From positions 25,544,001 through 25,608,000 of the forward strand of contig NC_043014.1 in NCBI RefSeq assembly GCF_006345805.1: a DNA stretch of 64,000 bases, read 5' to 3'. The notes below the pieces were generated by a model. That model did no database searches. It saw nothing but the letters and a program-made list of their open reading frames with translations, and had not been told where the DNA came from. This DNA comes from Octopus sinensis. Taxonomy: Eukaryota. Shown in pieces: positions 11,031-53,525 of this stretch. The position numbers were made by a program, and so were the translations under genes. How positions within the stretch are numbered: position 1 is the stretch's first letter; each line of letters opens with the position of its first letter.

Positions 11031-11404
11031 CTTCTGAACTAACTGGAATGATTAAAATATGGGATGATCATAGCTGGATTGCCTTTGATCATAGTTTATG
11101 CTGCATCAAGATTACCTGGTGTTAAACAATAACAAGTCAGTGAGCACAATATGCTAGATCATTTGAGAATATACAAGAATTCTTTTAGGCACCCATACTC
11201 CTATGTTCTGTTCTAATCACTACAGCACAAGCCAATAAGAAAGCCTCTAGAGGGCTGCTCAATCTGCTAAATATACCAGTAAAATTCCCTCAAATCACAA
11301 TTGCCATCATTAAAAGGAAGGCCTCATTAAATATGTGGTCTTTTTAGTTGGTCATGGTTTCAATATTGCTGATTACAAGTCTGCTCAACAGGGATAACCT
11401 GGGA

Positions 11405-11540
11405 TTGAGGAGGAGGAGGAGGTGGTGGTGGTGGTGGTGGTGGTGGTGGTGGTGGTGGTAGTAGTAGTAGTAGTAGCAGTAGCAGCAGCAGTATTAGTAG
11501 CAGTAGTAGTATCAGCAGTAGTGGCAGCAGCAGTAGTAGT
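11405..11540. repeat. Compound trinucleotide repeat (GAG/GTG/GTA/GCA) abutting the AGK 5' splice site
   Basis: Direct reading; starts immediately after the minus-strand donor GTAAG at 11545-11541. Confidence 0.95.
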
Positions 11541-11545
11541 CTTAC

Positions 11546-11625
11546 TTTGTTTTCCGTGTTTCAGCATCATTATAAACACCAAGCTGCAACCCTGACATAG
11601 CATAGGTGTTTTTACCATCTTCGGC
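11546..11625 (-). CDS. AGK: Acylglycerol kinase, internal exon (80 nt, phase 0 to phase 2)
   Basis: Acceptor TTTTAATTTCAG|, donor |GTAAG. AEDGKNTYAMSGLQLGVYNDAETRKT(K) aligns with vertebrate [27 protein letters not shown]. Phase joins cleanly to the 5225 exon. Confidence 0.9.
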
Positions 11626-12909
11626 CTGAAATTAAAATAAAAGATAAAACAAAAGTAAAAGATTACATGAAGTACAATTATGAGCCAAAATCAAATGTAC
11701 AGAAAATATTTTTTTAAATTAATAAAAATTCAATAAAATTAAACTTTTCAATGTAAAGAAAATTCCTGAAAACTAAAACTGAAAAATTAAACTAAAAAAA
11801 CTATTGCATTTGATGGTTTATAAGCCATAAGCATCTTGATTGGCAGTATTCTAAACTCTGATTTTATAGGCTAGCATCCTAAAAGTGAAGAATCTCTTCC
11901 TTGAACCAAGATTTATCAGTAATCTAAACCCTAAAATGAAGGATACATTGGGTAATGAAATCATAGTTAAGCTATTCTTTATTCTTTTGCTGGTTTTGGT
12001 TTTGCACTGCAGTCATCATGGGACACCTCTTTCAAAGGTCTTAGCTGATCATACCCCAGTACATATTTCAGTCTGGTACTTATTTTATCATACTCTGTTT
12101 GTTGAACTGCTACATTAAACAACAGCTGTTTAAAAACTGGAGTAAACACACACACAGACATAGATATCGTTATCATTAATGTTCATTTTCCATGCTGGCT
12201 TGAGTTGGACAGTATGACAGGAGCTGATGAACCAGAGGAGGACATCAATCTCCTATGTCTTCTTTGGTATGGTTTCTACAGCTAGATGCCCTTGCTAATG
12301 CAAGTCACTTTACAGTGTACTGGTTGCTTTTTACATAGTGCCAACCCTAGTGAGATCACCAAGTAATTTGCAAGACAAGACTCCTCAACTTAGGGGATGC
12401 AGTATTGAGGGAGATAGTTTTATGTCAGGCTTATGTACAGTTTTCCTCTACTAAATTCTATTCACAAGTTATAGTTCAGCTTGAAGTTATAATAGAAGAT
12501 ACTTGCTCAAAGTGCTGTGCTGTGGAATTGAACATGTAACTCGAAAACTGTAAAGCAAACTAACCAGTCATGCATACACTTATATCTTACAAAAAAAAAT
12601 GTAATGGCTATAACTATTCTGATCATATGTCTACTTGATCAGGGCTGGCCTGGGGGTTACACAGCTATTTCATCACTAAAACCAATTACATCATAGCCAT
12701 TACAATAAACACCACAATGAGATGAGCAATGAATAGTGATTGGATAATACAGTCCTAGATACACTATGTTTTAAAAGAAAGATGGTTGGTCATAGTTGAG
12801 TACCTTGACTATAATTTTGATCAGTGTTGACTTAAGTCTAAACAAGAACAAAAAAACAACAGATATGGCTTTCATTAGAGGAAAGTACATGTTAAAAATT
12901 CCACCTTAC

Positions 12910-17503: not shown

Positions 17504-18175
17504 GGTGCAGGTGTGGCTCTGTGGTAAGAAACTTGGTTCCAAAACACATGGTCCTAGGTTCAGTCCCACTGTGTAGCGACTTGGCATGTGTCTTCTGCTA
17601 TAGCCTCAGACTAACCAAAGAATGGATTTCGTAGACAGAAACTGAAAGAAATCAATTGTATATATATGTCATCATCATCATCATCATCGTTTAACGTCCG
17701 TTCTCCATGCTAGCATGGGTTGGACGGTTCGACCGGGGATCTGGGAAGCCAGAAGGCTGCACCAGGCTCCGGTCTTATCTGGCAATGTTTCTACAGCTGG
17801 ATGCCCTTCCTAACGCCAACCACTCCGTGAGTGTAGTGGGTGTTTTTTACGTGCCACCTGCACTGGTGCCAGGCGAGGCTGGCATCGGCCACGGTCGGAT
17901 TGGTGCATTTTACGTGCCACCTGCACGGAAGCCAGTTGAGGCAGCACTGGCTTCGGCCACGATTCGGATGGTGCTTTTTACGTGCCACCGACACGGAAGC
18001 CAGTCGAGGCGGATGTGTATATATATGTAAGTGTATGTGTGTATCTTTGTCTCTGTGTTTCTCCCTCATCACTGCTTCACAACTGCTGTTCGTTTATTTA
18101 CATCCCCATAACTTACTGGTTTGACAAGAAGAAACTAATAGAATAAGTACCAGGCTTATCAAAATAAAAAAAGCA
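17504..18175 (+). mobile_element. tRNA-derived SINE (CORE-like, OR1/OR2-type by inference) interrupted by an RTE tail
   Basis: A-box-like TGGCTCTGTGG, B-box-like GGTTCAGTCCC, CTTGGCATGTGTCTTC core, A-rich 3' end. Confidence 0.7.
17670..18015 (-). mobile_element. 5'-truncated RTE 3' tail insertion
   Basis: (CAT)n plus the shared tail; 13-bp TSD TGTATATATATGT at 17657-17669 and 18016-18028. Confidence 0.8.
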
Positions 18176-31258: not shown

Positions 31259-34200
31259 CCGCTACAGGAAGTCCAAAATTTTCTCATCCTTGTTGTCTCC
31301 CATGTACACGTCTGTCTCCCATGTACACGTCTGTCTCCCATGTACACTTCACATCCCTGTTGTCTCCCATGCCCACTTCAAGGTCTTACGCCACCTGCTC
31401 CTCCTTCCATAAATGGTAGTGGTCATTCATTGCAAGATATATTCGTAACATACGCGGTTTGAACTTAGGTTTAATTGTCTGTTTATGAATCCTGCCAAAC
31501 GCGAGTTTTCTTTTCAGGTTCATGATGCTACTAGGTCCAATGCCTCCCACTCCCTCAGGATTGGCACCCTCAATGTTGGCACACTGAAAGGCAGATCTGG
31601 CGAGATCGTTGAATTGCTTGAACGGAGGTGTGTGGATATATGCTGTATTCAAGAGGTGAGGTGGAGAGGAGGTTCTGCTAGGTTCCTCACAGGTAAATGA
31701 CAGAGGTACAAGATTTTCTGGGCTGGAAATACGGAAGGGTTCGGGGGAGTGGGTATGCTTATTGCCGAAAAATGGGTAGGTAAGGTAATCGAGGTAGTCA
31801 GAGTATGCGACAGAATACTGAAGATTAGTTTAGTGCTCCATCATAGTTTAGCAACTATTATATCGGCCTATGCCCCTCAGCCAGAGCTACCCGATGGACA
31901 GAAAGACTGTTTCTATGACACCCTACTGCAGACCACCTCATTGACGAACGACAGGGACCTTCTCTTTGTGGCTGGTGACTTCAATGGGCATGTTGGACGA
32001 TATGCTGAGGGCTTCTATGGCGTTCATGGAGGCTATGGTTATGGTTCTTGCAATGAGGAGGGAACCAGGCTGCTGGAGTTCTGTGATGCGAATAGTCTTA
32101 TGGTTTGCAACACTAACTTCAGGAAACCGACAAGCCACTTCGTCACCTACCGTTCGGGCCAGCATACTAGCCAAATCGACTACATCCTTGCCAGAAAAAG
32201 GGAAAGATGGCTGCTTATGAATGCCAAAACCTTCCCAGGCGAAGAATGTACCCCACAACATAGACTGGTAGTCAGTGACTTTAGAATCAGGACTAAGAGG
32301 ACGACCAACATGGAGAAGAAGGGTCTGGAAGCTTAAAGACCCTGCAAATGGACAGAGATTTAGAGACATGTTACTTGAAGCCTTTGACGAAATAGAAGGG
32401 GGTATAGCTACACATGGGGTAGAAGATAACTGGGCGCTTCTAAGGGACAACCTGCTGAAAGCCACTGACCAGATCTGTGGCTGGTGCAAAGTCCCCACAA
32501 GACCCAAAATAACGTGGTGGTGGAACAATACTGTTGATAGGGCTATTAGATAAAAGAAACAGGCTTGGAAGGACTGGAAGAACGGTGGTAGCAGGGAAGT
32601 GTATCAGACTGCAAGAACGGAGGCTAGGAGGCAGGTGTATTTAGCCAGAGGGGAAGCAGATAAGAAAAAATTTGCCAATGTCCTGCGCCATGAAGATGAA
32701 AGACTTGAGGTATTTCGTGTTGCAAGACAGTGTGTGAGAGAGAATCGTGACGTGGTAGGAGAGAAATGTGTTCGCAATGATGACGGCTCACTTGCGCTAA
32801 ATGAGGATGCAAAGAGAGAGGTTTGGAGACGCCACTATGAAAGGTTGCTGAATGAGGAAAATGAATGGGATAAAGAGAGTCTGCCGAATGTTGACCCAAC
32901 AGAGGGACCAGCAATCGGAGTTGACAGTTCCTTAGTAGTTAAGGCAATTACAAGCATGAAAACAGGGAAAGCCCCAGGCCCATGAGGAATTACTGCAGAG
33001 ATGCTCAAAATATCTGGTAGTGCTGGCTATAGCCTAGTCACCCGTATAGTTAACCAGGTGATACACGAAGGAGTCATTCCCAATGACTGGTGTAGCAGCA
33101 AAATAGTCAACTGCTACAAAGGTAAAGGTGGCACCCTAGATACAAATAATTACAGGGGTATCAAGCTGCTAGATCAGGTAATGAAGGTTGCGGAGAGGGT
33201 TATAGCCCAACAAATTAGAGAGAGAGTTAGCTTAGATCAGATGCAGTTTGGGTTCGTGCCAGGGAAAAGTACTACTGATGCTATTTACCTGGTAAGACAG
33301 CTGGCTTTTGTCGATATGGAGAAAGCCTTCGACAGGGTCCCCCGATCCCTTATCTGGTGGTCAATGAGGAAACTAGGGATAGATGAATGGTTAGTGAGAG
33401 CTGTACAAGCCATGTACAGAGACGCTGCTAGTAAGGTGAGGGTTGGCATCGAGTACAGTGAAGAATTCAGAGTAGAGGTTGGGGTCCACCAAGGTTCAGT
33501 CCTCAGTCCCCTCCTATTTATCATAGTCCTCCAGGCAATAACGGAGGAATTCAAGACAGGATGCCCCTGGGAGCTCCTCTATGCTGATGACCTTGCTCTA
33601 GGTTGGGGTCACCAAGGTTCAGTCCTCAGTCCCCTCCTATTTATCATAGTCCTCCAGGCAATAACGGAGGAATTCAAGACAGGATGCCCCTGGGAGCTCC
33701 TCTAAGCTGATGACCTTGCTCTAATTGCTGAGTCACTATCAGAACTGGAGGAGAAGTTTCAGGTGTGGAAGCAAGGTTTAGAATCGAAGGGCCTTAGAAT
33801 CAACCTAGCCAAAACCAAAGTCCTAATAAGTAGGAAGGTAGACCAATCACAAACGCCTTCAGGTAGATGGCCTTGCTCGATCTGTAGAAAAGGCGTAGGT
33901 AGAAACTCTTAAGATGCACCAAATGTAAGCTATGGACACATAAGAGATGTAGTAATGTCAAAGGAAGACTAACTAGGAAAATAGTTTTTATCTGTGGCAG
34001 ATGCTGAGGAGCAATAAACTCTGGAAATATGCAGAGACCAACTTCTATCACATTTCAGGGAGAAAAACTAGAAGTAGTTGATAGCTTCCGCTACCTAGAT
34101 GACCAAGTCAGTAGCGGGGGCGGGTGTGCTGAAAGTGTAACTGCTAGAGTAAGAATAGCCTGGGCAAAGTTTAGAGAGCTCTTACCCCTGCTGGTGACAA

Positions 34201-35539
34201 AAGGCCTCTCGCTCAAAGTAAAAGGCAGACTGTATGATGCATGTGTACGTACAGCCATGCTACATGGCAGTGAAACTTGGGCTGTGACTGCTGAGGATTT
34301 GCGTAAGCTCGCAAGAAATGAAGCTAGTATGCTCCGTTGGATGTGTAATGTCAGTGTTCATAGTCGACGGAGTGTAAGTACCTTTAGAGAAAAGTTGGTC
34401 CTAAGAAGCATCAGATGTTGTGTGCAAGAGAGACGATTGCGCTGGTATGGTCATGTGGCGAGAATGGATGAAGATAGGTGTGTGCAAAAGTGCCACACCC
34501 TGGCAGTTGAGGGAACCTGTGGAAGAGGTAGACCCAGGAAAACCTGGGTCAAGGTAGTGAAGCACGACCTTCGAACTTTAGGTCTCACCAAGGAAATGAC
34601 CAGAGACCGAGACCTATGGAAGTATGCTGTGCACGAAAAGACCCGGCAAGACCAGTGAGAACAACCAAAATCAAACCAAATCAAATCATATATCAGAAAG
34701 CAGAACCAAAATTGAGGTCGATCAACATCAGTGGGAATTGCAGCTGTGGTTAAGCGAACCATCCGTTCGTATCTGCTGCCAGCCCCGCCTGGCCCCCATG
34801 CCGGTGACACGTAAAAGCACCATCCGTTCGTGGCCGTTGCCAGCTCTGTCTGGCCCCCGTGTCGGTGGCACGTAAAAGCACCATCCGTTCGTGTCTGTTG
34901 CCAGCCTCGCCTGGCCCCCGCGCCGGTGACACGTAAAAGCACCATCTGTTCGTGGCCGTTTGCCAGCTCTGTCTGGCCCCATGTCGGTGGCACGTAAAAG
35001 CACCATCCGTTCGTGTCCGTTGCCAGCCTCGCCTGGCCCCCGTGCCAGTGACACGTAGAAGCACCATCCGTTCGTGGCCATTTGCCAGCTCTGTCTGGCC
35101 CCAGTGTCGGTGGCACGTAAAAGCACCATCAGTTCATGTCCATTGCCAGCCTCGCCTGGCCCCCGTGCCGGTGATACGTAAAAGCACCATCCGTTCATGG
35201 CCGTTTGCCAGCTCTGTCTGGCCCCCGTGTCGGTGGCACATAAAAGCACCATCCGTTCGTGTCCGTTGCCAGCATCGCCTGGCCCCGTGCCAGTGACACG
35301 TAAAAGCACCATCCGTTCGTGGCCGTTTGCCAGCTCTGTCTGGCACCTGTGCAGGTGGCACGTAAAAAGCACCCACTACACTCACGGAGTGGTTGGCGTT
35401 AGGAAGGGCATCCAGCTGTAGAAACACTGCCAGATCTGACTGGGCCTGACGAAGCCTTCCAGCTTCACAGACCCCAGTTGAACCGTCCAACCCATGCTAG
35501 CATGGAAAGCGGACGATGATGATGATGATGATGATGATG
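31259..35539 (+). mobile_element. Near full-length RTE LINE (APE + RT), inactivated
   Basis: LRIGTLNVGTLKG, QEVRW, AYAPQ, GDFNGHVG, SQIDYIL, SDHR-like PQHRLV, RT LYADD, stop at 34658. Several in-frame stops, a deletion near 33300 and a 124-bp tandem duplication. (GAT)n tail. Confidence 0.95.
34758..35370 (+). repeat. ~61-bp minisatellite, 10 units in strictly alternating A/B order, in the RTE 3' UTR
   Basis: AAGCACC recurs about every 61 bp; A units CCAGCC(T/C)CGCCTGG...GTGACAC alternate with B units CCAGCTCTGTCTGG...GTGGCAC. Confidence 0.9.
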
Positions 35540-35787
35540 AATAAGAGCAAAATTTGGTTAATTATTCCTTATGGAGCTCAAGTTAAAACAAACATTATTT
35601 AAGAGAATTTAAATATAATTGAAGTATTCATTAGAGATAAAAAATATAGTAACATTTTATCTAGTAATAATTTTGGAGTTGGTTATTCTAATACTAATAA
35701 TGTTGGTAACATTATTTCTTCTTTTAATAAATTTAAGCTGAATAAGCTTTACAAGAACAAATAAAATAATTATTCCAATAATAAAGA

Positions 35788-38309
35788 AACAAGCTTGGAA
35801 GGACTGGAAGAACGGTGGTAGCAGGGAAGTGTATCAGACTGCCAGAAGGGAAGCTAGGAGGCAGGTGTATTTAGCCAGAGGGGAAGCAGATAAGAAAAAA
35901 ATTTGCCAATGTTCTGCGTCGTGAGGATGAAAGACTTGAGGTATTTCGTGTTGCAAGACAGTGTGTGAGAGAGAATCGTGATGTGGTAGGAGAGAAATGT
36001 ATTCGCATGAATGATGGTTCACTTGCGCTAAATGAGCATGCAAAGAGAGAGGTTTGGAGACGCCACTATGAAAGGTTGCTGAATAAAGAAAATGAATGGG
36101 ATAAAGAGAGCCTGCCGAATGTCGACCCAACAGAGGGACCAGCTATCCGAGTTGACAGTTCCTTGGTAGTTAAAGCAATTAGAAGCATGAAGACAGGGAA
36201 AGCCCCAGGCCCATCAGGAATTACTGCAGAGATGCTCAAAATATCTGGTAGTGTCGGCTATAGCCTAGTCACCCGTATAGTTAACCAGGTGATACACGAA
36301 GGAGTCATTCCCAATGACTGGTGTAGCAGCACCATTGTCAACTGCTACAAAGGTAAAGGTGACGCCCTAGATACAAATAATTACAGGGGTATCAAGCTGT
36401 TGGATTAGGTAATGAAGGTTACGGAGAGGGTCAAAGCCCAACTAATTAGAGAGAGAGTTAGTTTAGATGAGATGCAGTTTGGGTTCGTATCAAGGAAAAG
36501 TACTACTGATGCTATATTCCTGGTAAGACAGCTGCAGGAGAAATACCTAGCCAAAGACAAGCCCCTGTACCTGGCTTTTGTTGACATGGAGAAAGCCTTC
36601 GACAGGGTCCCCGGATCCCTTATCTGGTGGTTAATGAGGAAACTAGGGATAGATGAATGGCTAGTGAGAGCTGTGCAAGCCATGTACAGGGACGCTGCTA
36701 GTAAGGTGAGGGTTGGCACTGAGTACAGTGAAGAATTCCGGGTAGAGGTAGGGGTCCACCAAGGTTCAGTCCTCAGCCCCCTCCTATTTATCATAGTCCT
36801 CCAGGTAATAATGGAGGAATTCAAGACAGGATGCCCCTGGGTGCTCCTCTATGCTGATGACCTTGCTCTAATTGCTGAGTCACTATCAGAACTGGAGGAG
36901 AAGTTTCAGGTGTGGAAGCAAGGTTTAGAATCAAAGGGCCTTAGAGTCAACCTAGCTAAAACCAAAGTTCTAATAAGTAGGAAGGTAGACAAATCACAAA
37001 CGCCTTCAGGTAGATAGCCCTGCTCGATCTGTAGAAAAGGCGTAGGTAGAAACTCTATAAGATGCACCAAGTGTAAGCTATGGACACATAAAAGGTGCAG
37101 CAATGTCAAAGGAAGGCTAACTAGGAAAATAGTTTTTGTATGTGGCAGATGCTCAGGAGCAATAAACACTGAAAATGTGCAGAGACCAACTTCCACCACA
37201 TTCCAGGGAGAAAAGCTAGGAATAGTTGATAGCTTCCGTTACCTAGGTGACCAAGTCAGTAGCAGGGGCGGGTGTGCTGAAAGTGTAGCTGCTAGAGTAA
37301 GAATAACCTGGGCAAAGTTCAGAGAGCTTTTACTCCTGCTCTCACTCAGAGTAAAAGGCAGACTGTATGATGCATGTGTACGAACAGCCATGCTACATGG
37401 TAGTGAAACTTGGGCTGTGACTGCTGAGGATATGTGTAAGCTTGCAAGAAATGAAGCTCTGATGGATGTGTAATGTCAGTGTTCGTACTCGACAGAGTGT
37501 AAGTACCTTGAGAGAAAAGTTGGACCTAAGAAGCATCAGTTGTGGTGTGCAAGAGAGACATTTGCGCTGGTATGGTCATGTGACAGGAATGGATGAAGAT
37601 AGTTGTGTGAAAATGTGCCACACCCTAGCGGTCGAGGGAACCTGTGGAAGAGGTAGACCCAGGAAAACCTGGGACGAGTTGGTGAAGCACGACCTTCGAA
37701 CTTTAGGTCTCACTGAGGAGAGTGAGACCGAGACCTTTGGAAGTATGCTGTGCGTGAGAAGACCTGGCAGGACAAGTGATTCCATAACCTATGGCCTCTA
37801 CCTGGGATGTAGCCAGTCCACTTATGCATACCTTCCTTCTTGGGACACAAAACTCTACTTGTGAAGACCTGTTGAGGCAAGTGAAAATCGAAATCGATCA
37901 ACATCAATGGAATTTGTAGCTGTGATACCAGTGCTGGGGGCACGTAAGCAAACCATCCAAACGTGGCCTTTGCCAGCCTTGCCTAGCCCCTTTGCCGGTG
38001 GCACGTAAAAAGCACCATCTGATCGTGGCCGTTGCCAGCCTCGCCTGGTCCCTGTGCTGGTGGCACATAAAAAGCACCATCCGACCGTGGCCGTTTGCCA
38101 GCCCCGTCTGGCACCTGTGCTGGTGGCACGTAAAAAGCACCCACTACACTCATGGAGTGGTTGGCGTTAGGAAGGGCATCCAGCCGTAGAAGCATTGCCA
38201 GATCAGACTGGGCCTGGTGCAGTCTTCTGGCCTCCCAGACACCAGTTGAACCGTCCAAACCCATGCTAGCATGGAAAGTGGATGCTAAATGATGATGATG
38301 ATGATGATG
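35788..38309 (+). mobile_element. 5'-truncated RTE LINE
   Basis: RT ORF pieces 35965-37017; (GAT)n tail; 8-bp TSD AATAAAGA at 35780-35787 and 38310-38317. Confidence 0.95.
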
Positions 38310-39292: not shown

Positions 39293-41113
39293 TTAAACTT
39301 AAATGTTGAAGTGAATCGAACGTCTTTTGTGTGTTTCTTAAATGGCTTACAAACACCTTCCACGCTGCAATTGTTCTTATATACAATTTCCCTGTAAATT
39401 TTTACAGCTTCATTTTTTGGTGATGAATGAAATGTCAAACATTTCCTAACTGTTAAAGCAATTCTTAATGTCAACTTCTTCATGCCTCTTCTATTTTTTT
39501 CCAAGCACCCATACTTACAGAGAAAATCGATTAAAACTCCATTCCTTCTTTCTTCCTCCATTAAAACAACCAGTTGCTCACACAGCCGCCATATACCATT
39601 CTGCTAGCAACAAGGGGACTACAGGATGACAGCCAGCCAAAACTTTATCTATGCTATCTCTCTTCTTTCACCTCTTTGTGGGGTTGATTATCTTCATCTT
39701 TAGTTACAGTTTTTCATTCAAAATTACGTAATATGCAGAATTGTCAGATTAATACAGTAGGGTGTTTTGAGGGAGATTTGGCTGCTAATTGTACCAGGTC
39801 TATCAACCATGTAGGCGTCTGAAATTCATTTTCATTCACAGATTTGCATTTCAAAAATTTCACATAATCTTTTCCATAAATCAACTATTGTAAAAATTTT
39901 CTACTATGACCTCGCATTTTCTATGTATGTGTGTGTACCTTAAAAGACGTGATTAGACAGAGGTCCAATAGAATAGTTCTCAGAAACAGACTACATACAA
40001 ATTCTTTCTTCACAACTCCTGAAGCTGTTTTCTGCGAAGATATTTTCACTTCACTCACTCTATCTCTCTTTCTCAACCTCTTTCTCTCTCACATACACAC
40101 GTGCAAGCACGCATACATACACACACGTCCATTTCACATATCTTCTTTCAATTTCTGCTATCTGCAAATAAAATTTTTATGGATGCAACTGTTTACAAAA
40201 ATAGGGATTAACCCTTACGTTACCAAGCCGCCCGAAAAAAATTTTGGTTAATGTGACCAAACCGCCCGTATTTACCTATTCATATTTAAATGAGAATATC
40301 AGAACAAATCTCTTTAGTACATTCGTGAAAACACATGATTATACTTCGTAAACAGTTCATCTACAGTTTTGTACAACAATCAACGTGTAATTTTAATTCC
40401 CTGAATTTTGGGAGATTTTTTTCCACATTTTTTTCGGCATCGATTTTTCTTCAACTTTGAAAATGGATAGGAGTTTCATGTTATCAAGCATTGATTCCGA
40501 ATTTAAAGCTTTTTCAACAGAAAATAGGGAGATATCGAGAAAAAGAATGAAATAGGTACAGAAGCACGTGGTGTACAAAATAATGAATAGGATTTTTTTT
40601 ATCCGAAAATGAAAGCGATTCCGAAGAAACAAATCGGCGATGGCGACCTCAAAGACGATTTTACATCGGAATGAAGTAAAAAAATTTTTTAATGTTTTTA
40701 TTAGCAATTTTTCTGAAGAGATAAAGTTTATCTATAGCCTTTCTTAGGAAGTGAAACCATTAGACTTTTATTTTTTTCAGTATGCTAGTTTGAAGCGATC
40801 ACTTCGAAAACAAATTTACGCAGATTGTAAACAAACACAAAATGGGGGTTCAAAGTTTAGAAAATTTGTGAAGCAAATACTGGGTACTGTTGTGGATTTA
40901 GTTTTGGTACTTGTTAATTGTCGTGGTCCCGGTTTTGCACGCGCGCGCGTCAGACGTAGGTACTCGATACTCGAGATCCTACGAGGTGACTTGCGCATGC
41001 GCAGTGCGCGATTCGCGCATGCGCGTTAAACCCCCCCCCCGGAAAAAAAAAGGATTTTTTTTAAAGATACCTTTCTGCTTTTTAAGACAAAAAGGTGTTG
41101 GATTTAACTAAAA

Positions 41114-41155
<42 letters not shown>

Positions 41156-41636
41156 AACATATTCAATTTTACACAAAAAAATTACATAGTCGCTTTCCTC
41201 GCGGATTTACAGATAAATGAATTAATTACTATTTTACAGAATAAAATTAATGAATTAATTATATAAATTAAATAATTCTTGAAAATTAATTATTATTAAT
41301 ACTCGAGATCTTACGAGGTGACTTGCGCATGCGCAGTGCGCGATTCGCGCATGCGAGTTAACCCCCCCCCCCCGGAAAAAAAAAAGGATTTTTTTTAAAG
41401 ATACCTTTGGTCGCTTTCCTCACGGATTTACAGATAAATGAATTAATTACTATTTTACAGAATAAAATTAATGAATTAATTATATTAATTAAATAATTCT
41501 TGAAAATTAATTATTATTAATAATATTTTTTGAACAAAGTAAAAAGTAATTACTTTTTTTTTACAGAAACGCGAACGGGGAATTTTCAGTTTAAAGTTTA
41601 TAAATAAATACATTTCATGTGTAATGTAAAATAGTA

Positions 41637-42544
41637 GTCAATTAATTAAATACCTTCTTTTTCTGGGGTATTATTCTTGTTCAAACTCGTCACATATTTG
41701 TAACTTTTCGATGTAAACCTTTCAAAGTAAGTCTTAAAAAGTTGCGGCAGCTTAGCAGAAATGTCACGTTATAATTTCTACCATGCAATGGTTTCAATAC
41801 ACGCGGGAGATCATACCCCTTCAAACTTTATATCATTCTGAAACATCTTTCAGAATATTCATCACACGACCGTTTTCATTTTGTCCAAATATTTTTTCCA
41901 CAGAAATTCATCAGAATTGTGGCGATTTTATGACAGTGTAGCAAATAGTAATCAACTAATTAAATACCTTCTTTTTCTGGGGTATTATTCTTGTTCAAAC
42001 TCGTCACATATTTGTAACTTTTCGATGTAAACCTTTCAAAGTAAGTCTTAAAAAGTTGCGGCAGCTTAGCAGAAATGTCACGTTATAATTTCTACCATGC
42101 AATGGTTTCAATACACGCGGGAGATCATACCCCTTCAAACTTTATATCATTCTGAAACATCTTTCAGAATATTCATCACACGACCGTTTTCATTTTGTCC
42201 AAATATTTTTTTCCACAGAAATTCATCAGAATTGTGGCGATTTTATGACAGTGTAGCAAATTAGTAATCAACTAATTAAATACCTTCTTTTTCTGGGGTA
42301 TTATTCTTGTTCAAACTCGTCACATATTTGTAACTTTTCGATGTAAACCTTTCAAAGTAAGTCTTAAAAAGTTGCGGCAGCTTAGCAGAAATGTCACGTT
42401 ATAATTTCTACCATGCAATGGTTTCAATACACGCGGGAGATCATACCCCTTCAAACTTTATATCATTCTGAAACATCTTTCAGAATATTCATCACACGAC
42501 CGTTTTCATTTTGTCCAAATATTTTTTTTCACAGAAACTCATCA
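41637..42544 (-). repeat. Left Merlin array, ~2.9 units of 314-316 bp (inverted relative to the right array)
   Basis: GATCATACCCC anchors at 41816, 42130 and 42446. Confidence 0.95.
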
Positions 42545-43195
42545 ATGCTGTTCCTTCTGCTGTCTTCTCTCTCCTTCTCCCTTATTTACTTCAGGCAATC
42601 TCCATCTATCGCAAAAAGGGATTTTGAAAATCTTTGTCATGATTTTAATCCGAGGAGTATCTTTTAACATTTTTTATTTTCGAATATCTCATTCTATATG
42701 TGGCCTTTTTATTTTTCTCAAGTTAATAAGTGCCAGTAATGAGAGGAACATATCACAATTTTCAGTTTCCTTTACATGTTCACATAATAAATACATATTA
42801 TGTCATTTTCTGTTAGGAAAGGCATAATTAATTTCAGTTAATGTTTGTCTAATTACCACAGTATTATGTAGATAACAGTTTGTTTATAAGGTTTTTATTG
42901 CCTACTTCAGAAAGCACATGACAAATATACTGAATCGGACAAGAATCTAATAAGACTCAACATCATGACAGTCAATCCTTATTCATGTATTTTCGTTAAC
43001 TTGGGTTTCAGCCCAAAACAATCTTTCATAGTAGGACTACAAATGTTTTTGAAAGAATATATTTTATCATCAGAATATATATACTTTTCTCACACTACAA
43101 TTAAGATATATTTATTTTAAATCGTTCATTTTTCTCCCCCCCCCCACAACAAAAATTAGTTTGAAAGAGGGGACAGAGAAAGTTCTAAAATCTAA

Positions 43196-43203
43196 CCAAT
43201 CAG
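43196..43203 (+). promoter_or_regulatory. Candidate CCAAT box upstream of the Merlin transposase
   Basis: AACCAATCAG about 100 bp upstream of the ATG; motif match only. Confidence 0.3.
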
Positions 43204-43297
43204 AGCTAACTGAATGATAGTCAGCTAACTGATACTGAAAATAACTTTATTTTCAGTTTATCTTCATCAGTTGAACTGTGAGTTAAATTAAGAAAAA

Positions 43298-44182
43298 ATG
43301 TTGTATGAGATAGAAAGCATCGTAAAAGACTTTGACAGTATCTATTCATTCCTAAAGGACAAAAAAGTGTTGAGTTCCTCAACTCCAATTTGCTCAAAAT
43401 GCCATAGAGAGATGACTCTTATAAAACACAACCAGGAAAAAATTTTTCGCTGCCCAACTCACAAAGGGGAAAAAGAGTCGATTAGAAAGAAATCGTATCT
43501 CGAAAATAGCAGATTGAAACTGCACGATTTCATTCATGTTATATATTGTTGGGGCAGTAACCTAACAATAACAGGAGCAATAGCAATGACTGGATTGTCA
43601 AAACCTAGCGTTATTCAATGGTATCAATACATGCGAGATATCTGTAGCAATAATCTAATCAACAATCCATACCAAATTGGTGGTGTCGGACACGTTGTTG
43701 AAGTAGATGAAAGTCTGATGTGTAAGAGAAAATACAATAGAGGGAGAACGCCACAAGAGAGATGGGTTTTTGGAGGTTACGACAGAGAAGACAAAAAAGG
43801 CTTCATACTGTTCGTAGCTGACCGTTCCTCGGAAACTCTGCTACCCATCATCAAAAAATTTATTAGACCGGGCACAACAATTCATTCGGATTGCTGGCCC
43901 GCCTATAATGGTATTGCAGAAATGGATGTGACACCAAAATACATCCATTTCACAGTAAACCATTCCCAGAATTTTGTGGATCCGCTAACAGGTGTACACA
44001 CAAATTCTGTGGAATGTTACTGGAAGAATGCCAAAAGAAAATTTAAAACGATGATGGGGGTACATTCCACCATGGTGAACTCGTACCTTGATGAGTTTCT
44101 GTGGAAGGAACAATATGGGCAAACTGCACACGATTGCTTGATGAATATTCTGAAACATCTTTCCGAATGGTATAGAGTTTGA
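43298..44182 (+). CDS. Merlin / ISXO2 (IS1595-like) DDE transposase, 294 aa, uninterrupted
   Basis: N-terminal CSKC...CPTH zinc finger; catalytic D (VEVDES), D (IHSDCW), E (TNSVEC); VNHSQNFVDP and YLDEFLW motifs. Confidence 0.95.
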   Translation: MLYEIESIVKDFDSIYSFLKDKKVLSSSTPICSKCHREMTLIKHNQEKIFRCPTHKGEKESIRKKSYLENSRLKLHDFIHVIYCWGSNLTITGAIAMTGLSKPSVIQWYQYMRDICSNNLINNPYQIGGVGHVVEVDESLMCKRKYNRGRTPQERWVFGGYDREDKKGFILFVADRSSETLLPIIKKFIRPGTTIHSDCWPAYNGIAEMDVTPKYIHFTVNHSQNFVDPLTGVHTNSVECYWKNAKRKFKTMMGVHSTMVNSYLDEFLWKEQYGQTAHDCLMNILKHLSEWYRV

Positions 44183-44208
44183 AGGGGTATGATCGCCCAA
44201 ATGTATTT

Positions 44209-46352
44209 TTGGACAAAATGAAAACGGTCGTGTGATGAATATTCTGAAAGATGTTTCAGAATGATATAAAGTTTGAAGGGGTATGATCTCCCGCGTGTAT
44301 TGAAACCATTGCATGGTAGAAATTATAACGTGACATTTCTGCTAAGCTGCCGCAACTTTTTAAGACTTACTTTGAAAGGTTTACATCGAAAAGTTACAAA
44401 TATGTGACGAGTTTGAACAAGAATAATACCCCAGAAAAAGAAGGTATTTAATTAGTTGATTACTAATTTGCTACACTGTCATAAAATCGCCACAATTCTG
44501 ATGAATTTCTGTGAAAAAAAATATTTGGACAAAATGAAAACGGTCGTGTGATGAATATTCTGAAAGATGTTTCAGAATGATATAAAGTTTGAAGGGGTAT
44601 GATCTCCCGCGTGTATTGAAACCATTGCATGGTAGAAATTATAACGTGACATTTCTGCTAAGCTGCCGCAACTTTTTAAGACTTACTTTGAAAGGTTTAC
44701 ATCGAAAAGTTACAAATATGTGACGAGTTTGAACAAGAATAATACCCCAGAAAAAGAAGGTATTTAATTAGTTGATTACTAATTTGCTACACTGTCATAA
44801 AATCGCCACAATTCTGATGAATTTCTGTGGAAAAAAATATTTGGACAAAATGAAAACGGTCGTGTGATGAATATTCTGAAAGATGTTTCAGAATGATATA
44901 AAGTTTGAAGGGGTATGATCTCCCGCGTGTATTGAAACCATTGCATGGTAGAAATTATAACGTGACATTTCTGCTAAGCTGCCGCAACTTTTTAAGACTT
45001 ACTTTGAAAGGTTTACATCGAAAAGTTACAAATATGTGACGAGTTGAACAAGAATAATACCCCAGAAAAAGAAGGTATTTAATTAGTTGATTACTAATTT
45101 GCTACACTGTCATAAAATCGCCACAATTCTGATGAATTTCTGTGGAAAAAAATATTTGGACAAAATGAAAACGGTCGTGTGATGAATATTCTGAAAGATG
45201 TTTCAGAATGATATAAAGTTTGAAGGGGTATGATCTCCCGCGTGTATTGAAACCATTGCATGGTAGAAATTATAACGTGACATTTCTGCTAAGCTGCCGC
45301 AACTTTTTAAGACTTACTTTGAAAGGTTTACATCGAAAAGTTACAAATATGTGACGAGTTTGAACAAGAATAATACCCCATAAAAAGAAGGTATTTAATT
45401 AGTTGATTACTAATTTGCTACACTGTCATAAAATCGCCACAATTCTGATGAATTTCTGTGGAAAAAAATATTTGGACAAAATGAAAACGGTCGTGTGATG
45501 AATATTCTGAAAGATGTTTCAGAATGATATAAAGTTTGAAGGGGTATGATCTCCCGCGTGTATTGAAACCATTGCATGGTAGAAATTATAACGTGACATT
45601 TCTACTAAGCTGCCGCAACTTTTTAAGACTTACTTTGAAAGGTTTACATCGAAAAGTTACAAATATGTGACGAGTTTGAACAAGAATAATACCCCAGAAA
45701 AAGAAGGTATTTAATTAGTTGATTACTAATTTGCTACACTGTCATAAAATCGCCACAATTCTGATGAATTTCTGTGGAAAAAAATATTTGGACAAAATGA
45801 AAACGGTCGTGTGATGAATATTCTGAAAGATGTTTCAGAATGATATAAAGTTTGAAGGGGTATGATCTCCCGCGTGTATTGAAACCATTGCATGGTAGAA
45901 ATTATAACGTGACATTTCTGCTAAGCTGCCGCAACTTTTTAAGACTTACTTTGAAAGGTTTACATCGAAAAGTTACAAATATGTGACGAGTTTGAACAAG
46001 AATAATACCCCAGAAAAAGAAGGTATTTAATTAGTTGATTACTAATTTGCTACACTGTCATAAAATCGCCACAATTCTGATGAATTTCTGTGGAAAAAAA
46101 TATTTGGACAAAATGAAAACGGTCGTGTGATGAATATTCTGAAAGATGTTTCAGAATGATATAAAGTTTGAAGGGGTATGATCTCCCGCGTGTATTGAAA
46201 CCATTGCATGGTAGAAATTATAACGTGACATTTCTGCTAAGCTGCCGCAACTTTTTAAGACTTACTTTGAAAGGTTTACATCGAAAAGTTACAAATATGT
46301 GACGAGTTTGAACAAGAATAATACCCCAGAAAAAGAAGGTATTTAATTAATT
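44209..46352 (+). repeat. Right Merlin array, ~6.8 near-identical units of 316 bp
   Basis: GAAGGGG anchors at 44281, 44597, 44913, 45228, 45544, 45860 and 46176; only scattered single-base differences. Confidence 0.95.
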
Positions 46353-46844
46353 GACTACTATTTTACATTACACATGAAATGTATTTATTTATAAACTTTA
46401 AACTGAAAATTCCCCGTTCGCGTTTCTGTAAAAAAAAAGTAATTACTTTTTACTTTGTTCAAAAAATATTATTAATAATAATTAATTTTCAAGAATTATT
46501 TAATTAATATAATTAATTCATTAATTTTATTCTGTAAAATAGTAATTAATTCATTTATCTGTAAATCCGCGAGGAAAGCGACCAAAGGTATCTTTAAAAA
46601 AATCCTTTTTTTTTTCCGGGGGGGGGGGGGGTTTAACTCGCATGCGCGAATCGCGCACTGCGCATGCGCAAGTCACCTCGTAAGATCTCGAGTATTAATA
46701 ATAATTAATTTTCAAGAATTATTTAATTTATATAATTAATTCATTAATTTTATTCTGTAAAATAGTAATTAATTCATTTATCTGTAAATCCGCGAGGAAA
46801 GCGACTATGTAATTTTTTTGTGTAAAATTGAATATGTTATATAT

Positions 46845-46876
<32 letters not shown>

Positions 46877-49060
46877 TTTTAGTTAAATCCAACACCTTTT
46901 TGTCTTAAAAAGCAGAAAGGTATCTTTAAAAAAAATCCTTTTTTTTTCCGGGGGGGGGGGTTTAACGCGCATGCGCGAATCGCGCACTGCGCATGCGCAA
47001 GTCACCTCGTAGGATCTCGAGTATCGAGTACCTACGTCTGACGCGCGCGCGCGCGCGAATTCGCGTGTGCAAAACCGGGACCACGACAATTAACAAGTAC
47101 CTTTAGTTTTTATACAGGGAAACTAATGTTAGTCAGCATGGCTTAGGGTATGATGTGGTCTGGAAGTTATTGTTTGAAGCGATCAATGCGGAAACAAACT
47201 TACGCAGAATGTAAACAAACACAAAATGGGGGTTCAAATTTTGGAAAATTTGTGAAGCAAATACTGGGTACTGCGTAGATTTAGTTTTTATACAGGGAAA
47301 ATAATGTTAGTCAGCATGGCCTAGGGAACGATGTGGTCTGGAATTTATCACTTCCATACCATAACCAGGGCCGTATATTATTTTTTGACCGATTTCTTTA
47401 GTTCGGTCAAACTTACGGTGGATTTCAATATTTCAGTTTATTTCACCTTTATGGTACACCTGTTGTGCATTAAATTCAACTGATGATATAGTGATGTGCA
47501 CAATTCTTCTTTATCAAAATTTTGTTGCATACCCATTTGAATATTAGCTGATGATTCATTTTCTATGGTGATGTTTAAACAAAATTTTAATATTTTTACT
47601 TTTGCTCAATTTAAAATTTTAATATTTTTACCTTTTGCTCAATTTACCTGGATTTACCTGTAATTAAAGTCACTTTGAGATAAAAGTTATGCAATAGAAT
47701 TGATTAAGAACCCTTTCTTTAATTATGTTCCAAATATATTAATATGTTGATAAGTAAAAAAGTTACAGTTATTTAATGAAACAAGCCTAGATTCATGATT
47801 ATTTTAGAATTTAATTGAAACTCATGAGGGGTGTATTTTGGTCAGAAACATAGTAACGAAAGGGTTAATATATAATTTCTTTCTATGTTCATAATTAAAT
47901 AAATGTTTGAATGATTACACAGGTCCAATACAAATAGCCCTCAGAAACAGACTATGTACAAATTCTTTCTTTACAACTCCTGAAGCTGTTTTCTGACGAG
48001 GGGGGGGGGGGAATTTTCATACAGCTGGAGGCTCCAGTCAAAACGGGGGACCCGAAATGATATGGTTGAAAAATGCTGTTATAGATTATGCCTAACAGAA
48101 AATGCACATCATCCAAACAGACCGGGTTAAACTGGTCTTAACTGCTAGTTATATATATATAAAGAATATGAGGGTTTTAGTTCACTGATGATCTAAACCA
48201 ATAGGTACACTGTGTAAGTGCTATAATTAGTCATCTTTTATGTTCCAAGTTCACAGCTAAAGTTGGAGCTAGGGAACCATAGTAGGCTTCCGAGTCAGCA
48301 GGTATATTTTTTTAAAAATGGATAACAAAACCAAGGCAGGACAAGTATCTCAGGGAATTTAGAATATTTAATGAGAGTAAGATGAATAAAAAAATAGAGA
48401 AGTAGAAATAATCAATGTCAAAAGACAAGGTGTGAATGCAGGAAAGTTCCAGGCAGAGAATTCACAGTAGATAGAAGAATAAAGACAGGAGAAAAAAGTT
48501 CACAGCTCATCTTGTTCCAGAGAGTATGGAAGTTAGTCCATACTTCCATGAAGGTATAGCCCATTAAGTATAATCCCAGGTAAATCCAGGCAGTATTTTT
48601 CATACACACCTTGTCTCTGATGACAGAATACCCAGTGTATGGAGATGTTGACCCATCACTTGGGATATCCCAGAAACAGTTGTAAGGCATTAATTACTAC
48701 ATTTTTGTAGTAATTACTACATTAATTAAATATTCTAAATTACTACATTAATATGACCTGATATACTCATACTGTCTTGGTTTTGTTGTCCATTTTCCTT
48801 TAATATATTTATGTAAACCCTGGTTACATATACTAAAATTTAAACATTCTATCAATATTTCATTTATGAACATTTATGTTTGAAACTTTAGCATAATGGG
48901 AAAATTAATTTTCTTTTTAATAGCTTAGTCATGACATTCTTCAGGGTCTTTTTAATTAGTGGGAAGAAGGGAGGAAGCTATCCTCAGATTAGACTATCAA
49001 TATACATTCCTCAACGTTCTTTGAAGAGATGATTTAATAATAGGCAGTGATAGTAGTTAC

Positions 49061-52249: not shown

Positions 52250-53525
52250 GAAAACCATCCGAACGTGGCCGTAGCCAGTACTGCATCGACTGGCCTCTGT
52301 GACGTGGGCACATAACAAACACCATCCGATCGTGGCCGTTCGCCAGCCTCATCTGGCACCTGTGTCGGTGGCACATAAAAACACCAACCGAAGACCCGGC
52401 AAGACTAGTCAGGCCATAACCCGTGGCCCCTACTTGGGACGTAGTCAGTCCCCTGTGCATACCTTCCTTCCTTCCTGTGACACTTGTGAAGACCTGTTGA
52501 GGCAAGTGAAAATCAAAATCAAATCAAATCAAATCAAAATGGATGAACAACCGAAGACCCGGCAAGACTAGTCAGGCCATAACCCGTGGCCCCTACTTGG
52601 GACGTAGTCAGTCCCCTGTGCATACCTTCCTTCCTTCCTGTGACACTTGTGAAGACCTGTTGAGGCAAGTGAAAATCAAAATCAAATCAAATCAAATCAA
52701 AATGGATGAACATCAATGGAATTTGTATCTTTGTGGTACCAGTGCCGGTGGCACACAAGAAAACCATCCGAACGTGGCCGTAGCCAGTACCGCATCGACT
52801 GGCCTCCGTGCTGTGGGCACGTAACAAACACCATCCGATCGTGGCCGTTCGCCAGCCTCATCTGGCACCTGTGTCGGTGGCACATAAAAACACCATCCGA
52901 AGACCCGGCAAGACTAGTCAGGCCATAACCCGTGGCCCCTACCTGGGACGTAGTCAGTCCACCTGTGCATACCTTCCTTCTTGTGACACTTGTGAAGACC
53001 TGTTGAGGCAAGTGAAAATCAAAATCAAAACAAATCAAAGTAGATGAACATCAATGGAATTTGTATCTTTGTGGTACCAGTGCCGGTGGCACACAAGAAA
53101 ATCATCCGAACGTGGCCGTAGCCAGTACCGCATAGACTGGCCTCCGTGCTTTGGGGACGTAACAAACACCATCCGATCGTGGCCGTCCGCCAGCCTCATC
53201 TGGCACCTGTGTCGGTGGCACATAAAAACACCATCCGAGCGTGGCCGTCTGCCAGCCTCGTCTGGCACCTGTGTCGGTGGCACATAAAAACACCATCCGA
53301 GCGTGGCCGTTCGCCAGCCTCGTCTGGCACCTGTGTCGGTGGCACATAAAATCACCCACTACACTCTCGGAGTGGTTGGCGTTAGGAAGGGCATCCAGCT
53401 GTAGAAACACTGCCAGATCTGACTGGCCTGGTGCAGCCTTCGGGCTCCCCAGACCCCAGTTGAACCGTCCAACCCATGCTAGCATGGAAAGCGGACGCTA
53501 AATGATGATGATGATGATGATGATG
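52250..53525 (+). mobile_element. Head-to-tail multimer of RTE 3' ends
   Basis: GAAGACCCGGCAAG restarts at 52390, 52553 and 52899; one terminal tail and (GAT)n at ~53500. Confidence 0.85.

Follow-up and report, generated by a model that had tools for sequence, protein, structure and literature searches.

How a DNA transposon might come to carry, in both of its ends, inverted arrays of a repeat resembling the last codons of its own transposase gene is the question raised by a 64,000-nucleotide stretch of Octopus sinensis DNA (hereafter, the window). Positions 40906-47101 of the window were found to be a single Merlin DNA transposon of 6,196 bp, both ends of which, 40906 and 47101, are exact. 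Each terminus carries 5'-GG and reads GGTACTTGTTAATTGTCGTGGTCCCGG, and the 9-bp target-site duplication (TSD) TTTAGTTTT lies on both sides, in line with the 5'-GG termini and the 8- or 9-bp TSDs of Merlin (PMC8101967). When the flanks were compared with the window by blastn, an uninterrupted paralogue of the insertion target was identified that serves as the empty site: the left flank 40788-40905 matched 47172-47288, and the right flank 47102-47170 matched 47280-47348, with 91.5% and 92.8% identity. Both matches overlap by exactly 9 bp, and TTTAGTTTT is present there once, at 47280-47288.

The 294-aa ORF in the middle of the element (Table 1) matched PF12762 (DDE_Tnp_IS1595) over residues 143-271 with E = 1.5e-20 and 74 bits, against a cut-off of 27 bits. 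PF12762 is carried by 783 homologues of the transposase, the best of which is an Octopus sinensis protein with 98% identity; an exact look-up of the window's transposase sequence returned nothing on record. In a full-length alignment of the window transposase with 11 Merlin proteins, D137 was invariant, E239 nearly invariant and D197 conserved in most of the 12 proteins. All three residues are present in the window transposase and, from their spacing, we take them to be the catalytic triad. An N-terminal CxxC...CxxH motif was also conserved in the alignment, and Merlins of molluscs, crustaceans and a sponge share a conserved C-terminal peptide, YLDEFLW..NIL.H.SE. Since the PF12762 domain, the GG termini, the 9-bp TSD with its empty site and the alignment with DDE residues all agree, we assigned the element to Merlin; as a whole, it is a complete and probably autonomous cut-and-paste transposon of the IS1595-like DDE type. 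The unique region upstream of the ORF presumably holds the transposase 5' UTR and promoter. An Rfam scan of the window from 38 to 50 kb matched no family.

Table 1 Features of the Merlin element and its insertion site (window positions)
Feature	Position	Strand	Evidence
Left TSD TTTAGTTTT, 9 bp	40897..40905	.	Read from sequence; identical 9-mer after right end
Left arm, terminal non-array part (~720 bp), starts GGTACTTGTTAATTGTCGTGGTCCCGG	40906..41627	+	Pairs with 46365-47101 as inverted repeat
Left-arm array, 2.9 units of 316 bp, antisense to transposase gene	41628..42545	-	TRF, unit phasing, unit alignment
Unique 752-bp region, left arm to start codon	42546..43297	+	Without repeat partner inside element
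Transposase ORF, 294 aa, Merlin/IS1595 type	43298..44182	+	PF12762 match and full-length alignment
Source segment ("unit 0"): last 31 codons, stop and 25 bp of 3' flank	44088..44207	+	Alignment/shuffle test, blastn, unit alignment
Right-arm array, 6.8 units of 316 bp, sense	44208..46364	+	TRF, phasing, distal-boundary alignment, unit alignment
Right arm, terminal non-array part, mirrors 40906-41627, ends ...CCGGGACCACGACAATTAACAAGTACC	46365..47101	-	
Right TSD TTTAGTTTT, 9 bp	47102..47110	.	
Uninterrupted paralogue of insertion target (empty site)	47172..47348	+	blastn of flanks against window

The left arm (40906-42545) is 1,640 bp long and the right arm (44088-47101, ORF-end segment included) about 3,014 bp, so that the arms make up about 75% of the element, as expected of foldback elements with very long, repeat-bearing inverted arms. 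These lengths lie outside the range of 24-462 bp for described Merlin terminal inverted repeats (TIRs), a range that is descriptive rather than strictly defining. In each arm, a terminal part of ~720 bp is followed inwards by an array of a 316-bp unit. The left terminal part contains a (CG)n tract, a TG microsatellite and two modules present twice each, one GC-rich and of ~96 bp (40967-41062 and 41299-41394), the other AT-rich and of 113 bp (41189-41301 and 41410-41522), and it is 99.7% identical to the right one. Tandem Repeats Finder (TRF) placed the arrays at 41629-42544 (2.9 copies) and 44208-46364 (6.8 copies), with 99% matches in each, which agrees with the counts given by the first-pass annotation, ~2.9 inverted units on the left and ~6.8 direct units after the ORF. 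Its description of a Merlin with foldback-like, modular and very long TIRs was likewise borne out by the PF12762 match, the TRF arrays, the inverted arms and the TSD. The arrays are mutually inverted; paired arm segments reach 602 nt with 99% complementarity, and one segment of 547 nt pairs at 100%. Private variants distinguish several units: R3 has lost 1 bp, R4 and R5 bear single substitutions, and L2 and L3 differ by indels. Each unit carries a 55-aa ORF. The last unit of every arm runs directly into the terminal part of the TIR. Nine AATAAA/ATTAAA hexamers lie on the plus strand of the left arm and 5' region, upstream of the ORF; by a rough estimate based on about 1 kb of non-redundant arm sequence, the asymmetry of these poly(A) hexamers is not significant.

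Positions 1-118 of the unit are homologous to the 3' end of the transposase gene at 44088-44207, with 81% identity and E = 8e-21 by blastn. The local alignment score between the ORF end and the unit was 125, compared with 20.4 +/- 2.6 and a maximum of 36 in 1000 dinucleotide shuffles; the similarity is significant, and the earlier observation that the unit starts with a diverged copy of the last 31 codons, for which the quoted unit and ORF peptides were exact, therefore stands. The left arm is, as also claimed, antisense to the 3' end of the gene, over 118 bp. The innermost left unit runs to 42545, where its minus strand reads TTGATGAG, an ORF-like sequence that was aligned to the ORF at the inner boundary; unit phasing confirmed that this unit retains the ORF-like GATGAG noted before. 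On the right, the source segment is broken off at 44207, and the array begins out of phase at unit position ~25 (44207|44208). The further statement that the TIR satellites are built from the transposase C-terminus holds for the homology of the first 118 bp but is overstated: the coding-derived part is only 93 of 316 bp, and about 70% of the unit, including the ~200 bp beyond position 118, is old 3' flank and a ~26-bp junction filler. In the window, this filler is confined to unit junctions, and no alignment was obtained with the ORF sequence before 44088 or with the inner flank of the left arm. Because the transposase C-terminus is conserved in Merlins of other phyla, sequence comparison identifies the gene as the source and the unit as the copy, as the first-pass annotation had it; consistent with this direction, outgroup codons place most ORF-unit differences on the unit lineage. 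The opposite possibility, that the ORF acquired its C-terminus from the repeat, was ruled out by the same conservation.

A second copy, L001, was found via the annotated O. sinensis protein at an unrelated locus (assembly GCA_006345805.1). It has the same modules and the same junction between ORF end and array (GTGTATT|TTTGGAC), but 1.9 units in each arm; it is flanked by the 9-mer GAATTTCTA, there being 4 additional bp on the right side, and its ORF is frameshifted. Since L001 has its own flanking 9-mer, the modules and the junction at an unrelated locus, the whole structure moves as one unit. Between the two copies, the unique region upstream of the ORF is 99.3% identical, and the ORFs show synonymous and non-synonymous differences in a ratio of 5:5, so that these two copies do not demonstrate selection on the transposase. 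Six substitutions and a 4-bp indel are fixed between all units in both arms of the window copy and all units in both arms of L001, and arm identity is 99.7% within a copy versus 98.5-99.3% between the copies. These copy-specific fixed differences demonstrate concerted evolution of the units. In contrast, the array edges are ORF-like in both copies, with GATGAG in the innermost left unit of the window copy and GATGAGTTTCTATGGAAGGAA in that of L001. Two related Merlin loci were also considered. The Merlin at L003 has a 9-bp TSD, as does the window element, and the two have the terminal motif GGTACT..TTAA..GTGGTCCC in common; the TIRs of L003 are ordinary, of ~370 bp, and a 125-bp array lies outside the TIR. 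The octopus locus L002 (P0004) is degenerate, without clear TIRs, and served only as a codon outgroup.

These data suggest that the TIRs probably grew to 1.6-3.0 kb by two ordinary processes at the DNA level, and that the arrays are most likely a by-product of recombination. The right end, from codon 264 to the terminus (about 1 kb), would have been copied in inverted orientation to the left end, leaving a long TIR with its inner edge inside coding sequence at TTGATGAG. The inner ~290 bp of this TIR (31 codons and 3' flank) would then have been tandemly duplicated with the ~26-bp filler at the junctions. Unit number may thereafter have drifted by slippage or unequal exchange, separately in each arm and each copy, while exchange among units and arms would hold the units ~99% alike and leave older, ORF-like states at the array edges. 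The true ORF end would stay under coding constraint, with the unit copies, which have a premature stop, left to decay. The start of the tandem unit coincides to the nucleotide with the inner edge of the TIR, which would not be expected from purely random duplication; it hints at either a mechanistic link, for example template switching or breakage where the inverted repeat ends, or one single event. We infer the order of events, the mechanism of exchange and the lack of function from the window copy and L001, and because the comparison covers these two copies only, it does not establish the order of events or the neutrality of the arrays.

The similarity between ORF and unit is uneven. In the window copy, 14 of 15 positions match at unit positions 1-15, 22 of 35 at 16-50 and 59 of 68 at 51-118; in L001, the mismatches number 14 of 35 at 16-50 and 1 of 68 at 51-118 (Fisher p = 4e-7). 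The longest exact ORF-unit match is 19 nt in the window copy and 36 nt in L001. For positions 51-118 to stay so close to the ORF, either gene conversion with the end of the ORF must be continuing or this part of the unit must be under constraint, and constraint, if true, would argue for function. One such function would be that the arrays were selected as extra transposase-binding sites aiding synapsis or transposition, as with the THAP domain on the TIR repeats of Galileo. The tandem repeats in Galileo TIRs bear secondary binding sites, and multiple sites have been called a convergent trait (PMC3573991; cited in PMC4079207). The unusual conservation of positions 51-118 relative to 16-50 would fit such selection, and the conserved CxxC...CxxH motif could bind DNA. 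Nonetheless, we regard this role as rather unlikely, given that unit number varies widely (2.9/6.8 in the window copy, 1.9/1.9 in L001) and that 10- to 16-mers of the terminal 45 bp have no copy in the unit, on either strand, or elsewhere in the arm (k-mer length/mismatches 10/0, 12/1, 14/2 and 16/3).

The inverted arrays could also act as a built-in hairpin, in the manner of self-silencing loci such as Mu killer-type inverted duplications, whereby a transcript across both arms would form long dsRNA that is processed into small RNAs or serves as an ADAR substrate, damping expression of the element, including through the antisense copy of the ORF 3' end. In C. elegans, Tc1 is an established case of a TIR element whose read-through transcripts trigger RNAi. 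Over at least 900 nt of array, complementarity between the arms is 99%, the left units run antisense to the end of the ORF, and 36 nt of ORF and unit are identical in L001; but the copy with the intact ORF has no exact match longer than 19 nt, and the nine upstream plus-strand hexamers would tend to end an inward transcript before it spanned both arms. Since hairpin potential is common to any long-TIR element, the coding-derived piece adds little, and we consider this role improbable. Still somewhat less probable is that the antisense, multiplied copy in the TIR is a copy-number-sensing brake on the 3' end and 3' UTR of the transposase mRNA, operating by read-through or TIR-initiated transcripts, long dsRNA, and small RNAs or ADAR hyper-editing. 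If so, the editing-rich cephalopod host would be the setting for such hyper-editing, and the window copy, without ORF-unit matches longer than 19 nt, would represent an escape, whereas the frameshifted L001 keeps 36 nt. The proposal of the first-pass annotation that the array might be a satellite factory, a self-silencing hairpin or a set of extra binding sites gains no support here. No free 316-bp array was present in the 64-kb window or in three other loci examined, no match to the unit lay outside the element in the window or at the L001 locus, and neither a protein search with the 55-aa ORF of the unit nor a search of JGI metagenome contigs with a 30-mer of the unit gave a match. An assembly artefact behind the arrays, or behind the number of units in them, is very unlikely: 99%-identical 316-bp units are hard to assemble, but L001 repeats the architecture and junctions with its own 1.9 and 1.9 units, and the private variants are unlike a collapsed or inflated repeat. 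Least probable of all is a composite, with a short-TIR Merlin nested in, or flanked by, unrelated foldback or MITE copies. Modular arms would suit it, but it was rejected because the arm homology extends into the ORF (TTGATGAG at 44088), a single 9-bp TSD encloses the full 6.2 kb and the entire structure recurs at L001; nor does an inner TIR or TSD mark 42545/42546 or 44207. Most likely, the arrays are a by-product of recombination-prone long inverted repeats rather than an adaptation.

The element matches described Merlins, which are summarised in PMC8101967 (after Feschotte 2004) as having 5'-GG termini, TSDs of 8-9 bp and a DDE transposase of the IS1595 type that is about 290 aa long. That summary also notes internal tandem repeats in several Merlin families and counts 191 Merlin sequences in Octopus bimaculoides, where the superfamily is abundant. 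It gives TIRs of 24-462 bp, whereas those of the octopus element measure 1,640 and about 3,000 bp, and the repeats that it describes are internal to the element, whereas the octopus repeats form inverted arrays within both TIRs. Very long TIRs filled with tandem arrays are new for Merlin but already known from Galileo of flies, which is the closest precedent. Like the octopus element, Galileo (P superfamily, Drosophila, "foldback-like") encodes a transposase and has very long TIRs (up to ~1.26 kb) with tandem repeats (~210 bp) whose number is unequal between the two TIRs of one copy, and its TIRs gained length when neighbouring internal sequence was taken up in inverted orientation (PMC3573991). 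Because both processes, the expansion of arrays and the uptake of internal sequence by the TIR, are documented in Galileo (PMC3573991), the octopus case is less exceptional than the first-pass annotation had supposed. The two differ in superfamily (P/THAP versus Merlin/IS1595), and the piece recruited in the octopus element reaches 31 codons into a still-intact ORF and joined the tandem unit.

Tetris, a foldback element of Drosophila virilis, also has modular TIRs with a terminal domain and a variable tandem array, the unit of which seems to derive from part of its own TIR (PMC4079207). Unlike the octopus element, Tetris lacks an ORF and is of uncertain superfamily; its TIR-220 satellite is a worked example of transposon-borne repeats seeding a satellite (PMC4079207), with free arrays demonstrated, whereas none of the 316-bp unit were seen in the window and three loci. 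Classical Foldback (FB) elements of Drosophila share long, inverted arms that are rich in tandem repeats, variable in length and able to fold back. FB arms are repetitive to near the termini, whereas the terminal ~720 bp of the octopus element are not made of the 316-bp unit; FB is also defined by little or no coding capacity, most copies being without coding sequence, whereas the octopus element has an intact 294-aa transposase ORF in its middle and so resembles Galileo rather than classical FB. Since its transposase is apparently intact and its copies show about 99% identity, the family may be active in octopus even now, in which case it could be used to find out whether arrays in TIRs promote transposition, give rise to satellites or set off silencing. 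Because the source of the repeat still lies beside the array in an intact gene, the case is unusually legible: TIR extension into codons, tandem duplication, and homogenisation that leaves ORF-like array edges can be read from two copies. Merlin joins P/Galileo and Mutator/FB as superfamilies in which a foldback-like architecture arose independently, which supports the idea that recombination between inverted ends leads convergently to long TIRs with internal repeats.

The Merlin element carries GGTACTTGTTAATTGTCGTGGTCCCGG as terminal sequence at both ends and is flanked on either side by TTTAGTTTT. Its insertion target is locally duplicated: positions 40788-40905 match 47172-47288, positions 47102-47170 match 47280-47348, and exactly 9 bp are common to both matches, indicating that the window holds the element's own empty site. 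This paralogous site confirms the element ends together with a 9-bp target-site duplication, and the limits proposed in the first-pass annotation, 40906-47101, are thus exact. GG termini and 8-9-bp duplications are hallmarks of Merlin elements, whose published terminal inverted repeats (TIRs) measure 24-462 bp (PMC8101967). The arms of the window copy, 1,640 bp on the left and about 3,000 bp on the right, reach 3.5-6.5 times the reported superfamily maximum. A repeat finder traced their inverted homology outward as far as 40937 on the left and 47054 on the right; paired arms of up to 602 nt showed 99% complementarity, and a single stretch of 547 nt reached 100%. The target belongs to a ~187-bp local tandem duplication with the element in one of its copies; target sequence on the right side is partly repeated at 8.6-8.9 kb, indicating that the target itself is a dispersed repeat.

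The transposase ORF matches the Pfam domain DDE_Tnp_IS1595 (E = 1.5e-20) and has 783 homologues with this domain, the closest being an Octopus sinensis protein with 98% identity. It aligns over its full length with Merlin transposases of molluscs, crustaceans and a sponge, and has D137, D197 and E239. The element is probably autonomous. An N-terminal CxxC...CxxH motif (C32, C35, C52, H55), kept across the aligned Merlin proteins and weakly matching Zn_ribbon_TFIIB (E = 0.016), looks like a zinc-ribbon DNA-binding module. The arms have further features of their own. The length of a (CG)n tract just inside the termini and its ACGCGAATTCG insertion vary between arms and between the window copy and a second copy at locus L001. 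All six copies of the palindrome GCGCATGCGC in the 64-kb window lie inside GC-rich ~96-bp modules of the two arms; it fits the NRF-1-type binding consensus, and these modules could be promoter-like.

Positions of the Merlin elements and other features in the window, at the second copy (L001), at a degenerate related octopus locus (L002) and at a related Merlin (L003).
Feature	Sequence	Position	Orientation	Properties
Left 316-bp array	window	41629-42544	inverted relative to right array	2.9 copies, 99% matches (Tandem Repeats Finder)
Right 316-bp array	window	44208-46364	inverted relative to left array	6.8 copies, 99% matches (Tandem Repeats Finder)
Transposase ORF	window	43298-44182		294 aa; between the two arrays
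CxxC...CxxH motif	window	43391-43465		ORF residues 32-55
Hairpin, ORF end	window	44149-44166		TCTGAAA-CATC-TTTCAGA
Hairpin, unit (example)	window	45190-45207		TCTGAAA-GATG-TTTCAGA
(CG)n tracts	window	40939-40949, 47042-47068
(CG)n tracts	L001	7934-7958, 12156-12172
Palindrome GCGCATGCGC	window	40993, 41015, 41325, 46660, 46967, 46989
Target duplication, interrupted copy	window	40788-40905 + 47102-47170
Target duplication, other copy	window	47172-47348
Partial repeat of right-side target	window	8565-8878		87% identity
LINE-type remnant	window	31749-37017
61/122-bp tandem array	window	34758-35373		interrupts LINE-type remnant
GGTGCTTTTTACGTGCCACC-motif arrays	window	5546-5714, 17839-18010, 34758-35373, 37931-38141, 53164-53356
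GGTGCTTTTTACGTGCCACC-motif arrays	L002, O. sinensis	11000-12400
Second Merlin copy	L001	7899-12199		~4.3 kb; ends, terminal modules, ORF-end/array junction as in window copy
84-bp-period array	L001	15210-16256		11.3 copies
Related Merlin	L003, ENA assembly	7489-11399		62% protein identity
125-bp tandem array	L003	9856-10399		4.3 copies

Tandem Repeats Finder and the repeat finder returned the copy numbers after the ORF and in the left arm, and the inversion between them, that had been read from the sequence alone. Phased from GATGA, the unit start translates as DEFLWKKIFGQNENGRVMNILKDVSE followed by a stop, and the ORF ends in DEFLWKEQYGQTAHDCLMNILKHLSEWYRV and its stop, matching the peptides quoted earlier. 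Local alignment of the last 300 nt of the ORF with a unit dimer scored 125, against 20.4 ± 2.6 (maximum 36) in 1000 dinucleotide shuffles; the likeness therefore survives this test. Homology starts exactly at T/TGATGAG (44088/44089) and ends at 44207, comprising 93 coding nt and 25 nt past the stop, with agreement at 14/15 sites in unit positions 1-15, 22/35 in 16-50 and 59/68 in 51-118. Since the C-terminal peptide YLDEFLWREQYG.TG...F.NIL.H.SE is kept across phyla in the Merlin alignment, with E266 and W269 invariant, the ORF end is ancestral and the unit is the copy. Outgroup codons from two Merlins indicate that most differences within the divergent core arose along the unit lineage, and many of these changes run towards A or T, as would be expected of a decaying non-coding copy.

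The last unit in each arm runs unbroken into the terminal part of that arm, and internal units end in about 26 bp (CTGTCATAAAATCGCCACAATT plus C/T and T) with no occurrence elsewhere in the window. From this arrangement, the unit is read as about 290 bp of the original 3' end of the element (31 codons and the 3' flank) plus junction filler. The proposed origin of the unit from the transposase C-terminus thus holds for the 118-bp homology, with the ORF as source, but only about 30% of the unit is coding-derived. At the junction between the ORF copy and the array the phase is broken: unit position 118 is followed by position ~25 (GTGTATT, then TTTGGAC), which implies a later deletion of ~220 bp or unequal exchange. 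A hairpin in the ORF end also occurs in the L001 units, and in all window units its 4-nt loop is exactly inverted, as hairpin-mediated template switching would be expected to produce.

The second copy, L001, was reached via an annotated O. sinensis protein and lies on chromosome CM016862.1, with flanks unrelated to those of the window element. The 9-mer GAATTTCTA borders this copy on each side; at the right end, four additional bases (GACC) separate the two (12196-12212). The matching structure at an unrelated locus demonstrates that the architecture belongs to a mobile family, and it rules out an assembly artefact as the source of the arrays. The search for another copy, suggested in the first-pass annotation, also showed that unit number varies between copies and between arms: the left arm of L001 has 1.9 units and its right arm about 1.9, against 2.9 and 6.8 in the window. 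A 2-bp deletion in the L001 ORF (10805-10815) frameshifts the last ~25 codons; it falls exactly within the unit-homologous segment. About 3 kb from this Merlin, inside a called gene, lies an 84-bp-period array, of a period and sequence consistent with a run of C2H2 zinc fingers.

Comparison of the two copies points to how the arrays evolved. The innermost left unit of the window copy retains the ORF-like GATGAG, as had been claimed, and the preceding TT, both lost from internal units, and its counterpart in L001 reads GATGAGTTTCTATGGAAGGAA, compared with ...TGGAAGGAAC in the ORF. These ORF-like states show that the inner end of the left arm derives from the ORF end, copied in inverted orientation; the escape of array edges from homogenisation is the classic pattern. 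All window units differ from all L001 units, in both arms of each, by six fixed substitutions and a fixed 4-bp indel, indicating that in each lineage information has passed from unit to unit and from one arm to the other. Identity is 99.7% between arms within a copy and 98.5-99.3% between the window copy and L001. The L001 unit differs from the ORF end at 1/68 sites at positions 51-118 and at 14/35 in the core (Fisher p = 4e-7), a pattern that argues either for conversion still going on between the ORF end and the unit beside it or for constraint on this segment. We propose that the TIR would first have extended inwards into the element's own coding sequence by inverted duplication, its inner part then being duplicated in tandem; the array would later have expanded and contracted through slippage or unequal exchange, with units homogenised by conversion.

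Several results bear on the functional ideas, namely multiplied transposase-binding sites, hairpin RNA for self-silencing and a satellite factory. K-mers drawn from the terminal 45 bp did not recur in the unit or the remaining arm of the window element, which would be compatible with a different subterminal binding site. Hairpin potential is obvious from the 99% complementary arms, yet is common to any long-TIR element. The longest exact identity between ORF and unit is 19 nt in the intact window copy and 36 nt in L001. Nine AATAAA/ATTAAA hexamers lie on the + strand upstream of the ORF (40906-43297, the left arm and 5' region), and the sense strand has none between the stop codon and a point past the right end (44183-47400). 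No unit copies were found outside the element in the window, at L001 or at the other loci examined, and a unit-peptide search and a DNA search of metagenome contigs gave no matches.

Other repeats accompany the element. A LINE-type retrotransposon remnant contains an Exo_endo_phos_2 endonuclease domain (E = 1e-7) and two reverse-transcriptase fragments (RVT_1, E = 3e-23 and 2e-27). A GC-rich motif of ~62-68 bp (…GGTGCTTTTTACGTGCCACC…GGCCACG…) forms short tandem arrays at many sites in the window and at L002, and probably belongs to a SINE-like repeat that is abundant in octopus.

The observation of a foldback-like Merlin was confirmed, and its structural interpretation was largely right. Both processes that we propose, inward TIR extension and array change, are already documented in Galileo of Drosophila mojavensis, in which the number of TIR tandem repeats is unequal between the two TIRs of one copy and internal sequence next to the TIR has been recruited into it (PMC3573991). 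Its authors proposed that long TIRs attract recombination and are a convergent trait (PMC3573991). The Drosophila element Tetris is a worked example of TIR repeats seeding a satellite (PMC4079207), and internal tandem repeats of Merlin families have been suggested as possible proto-satellites (PMC8101967). L003 shares its terminal motif, which reads GGTACTCCTTAACAACAGTGGTCCC in L003, with the window element and has a 9-bp duplication, TTCGATGTT; in contrast, its TIRs are ordinary (~370 bp), and its tandem array lies downstream of the ORF, outside the TIR. The window element is the first foldback-like Merlin that we found described, and the unit of its TIR array visibly goes back to the 3' end of a transposase gene that is still intact.
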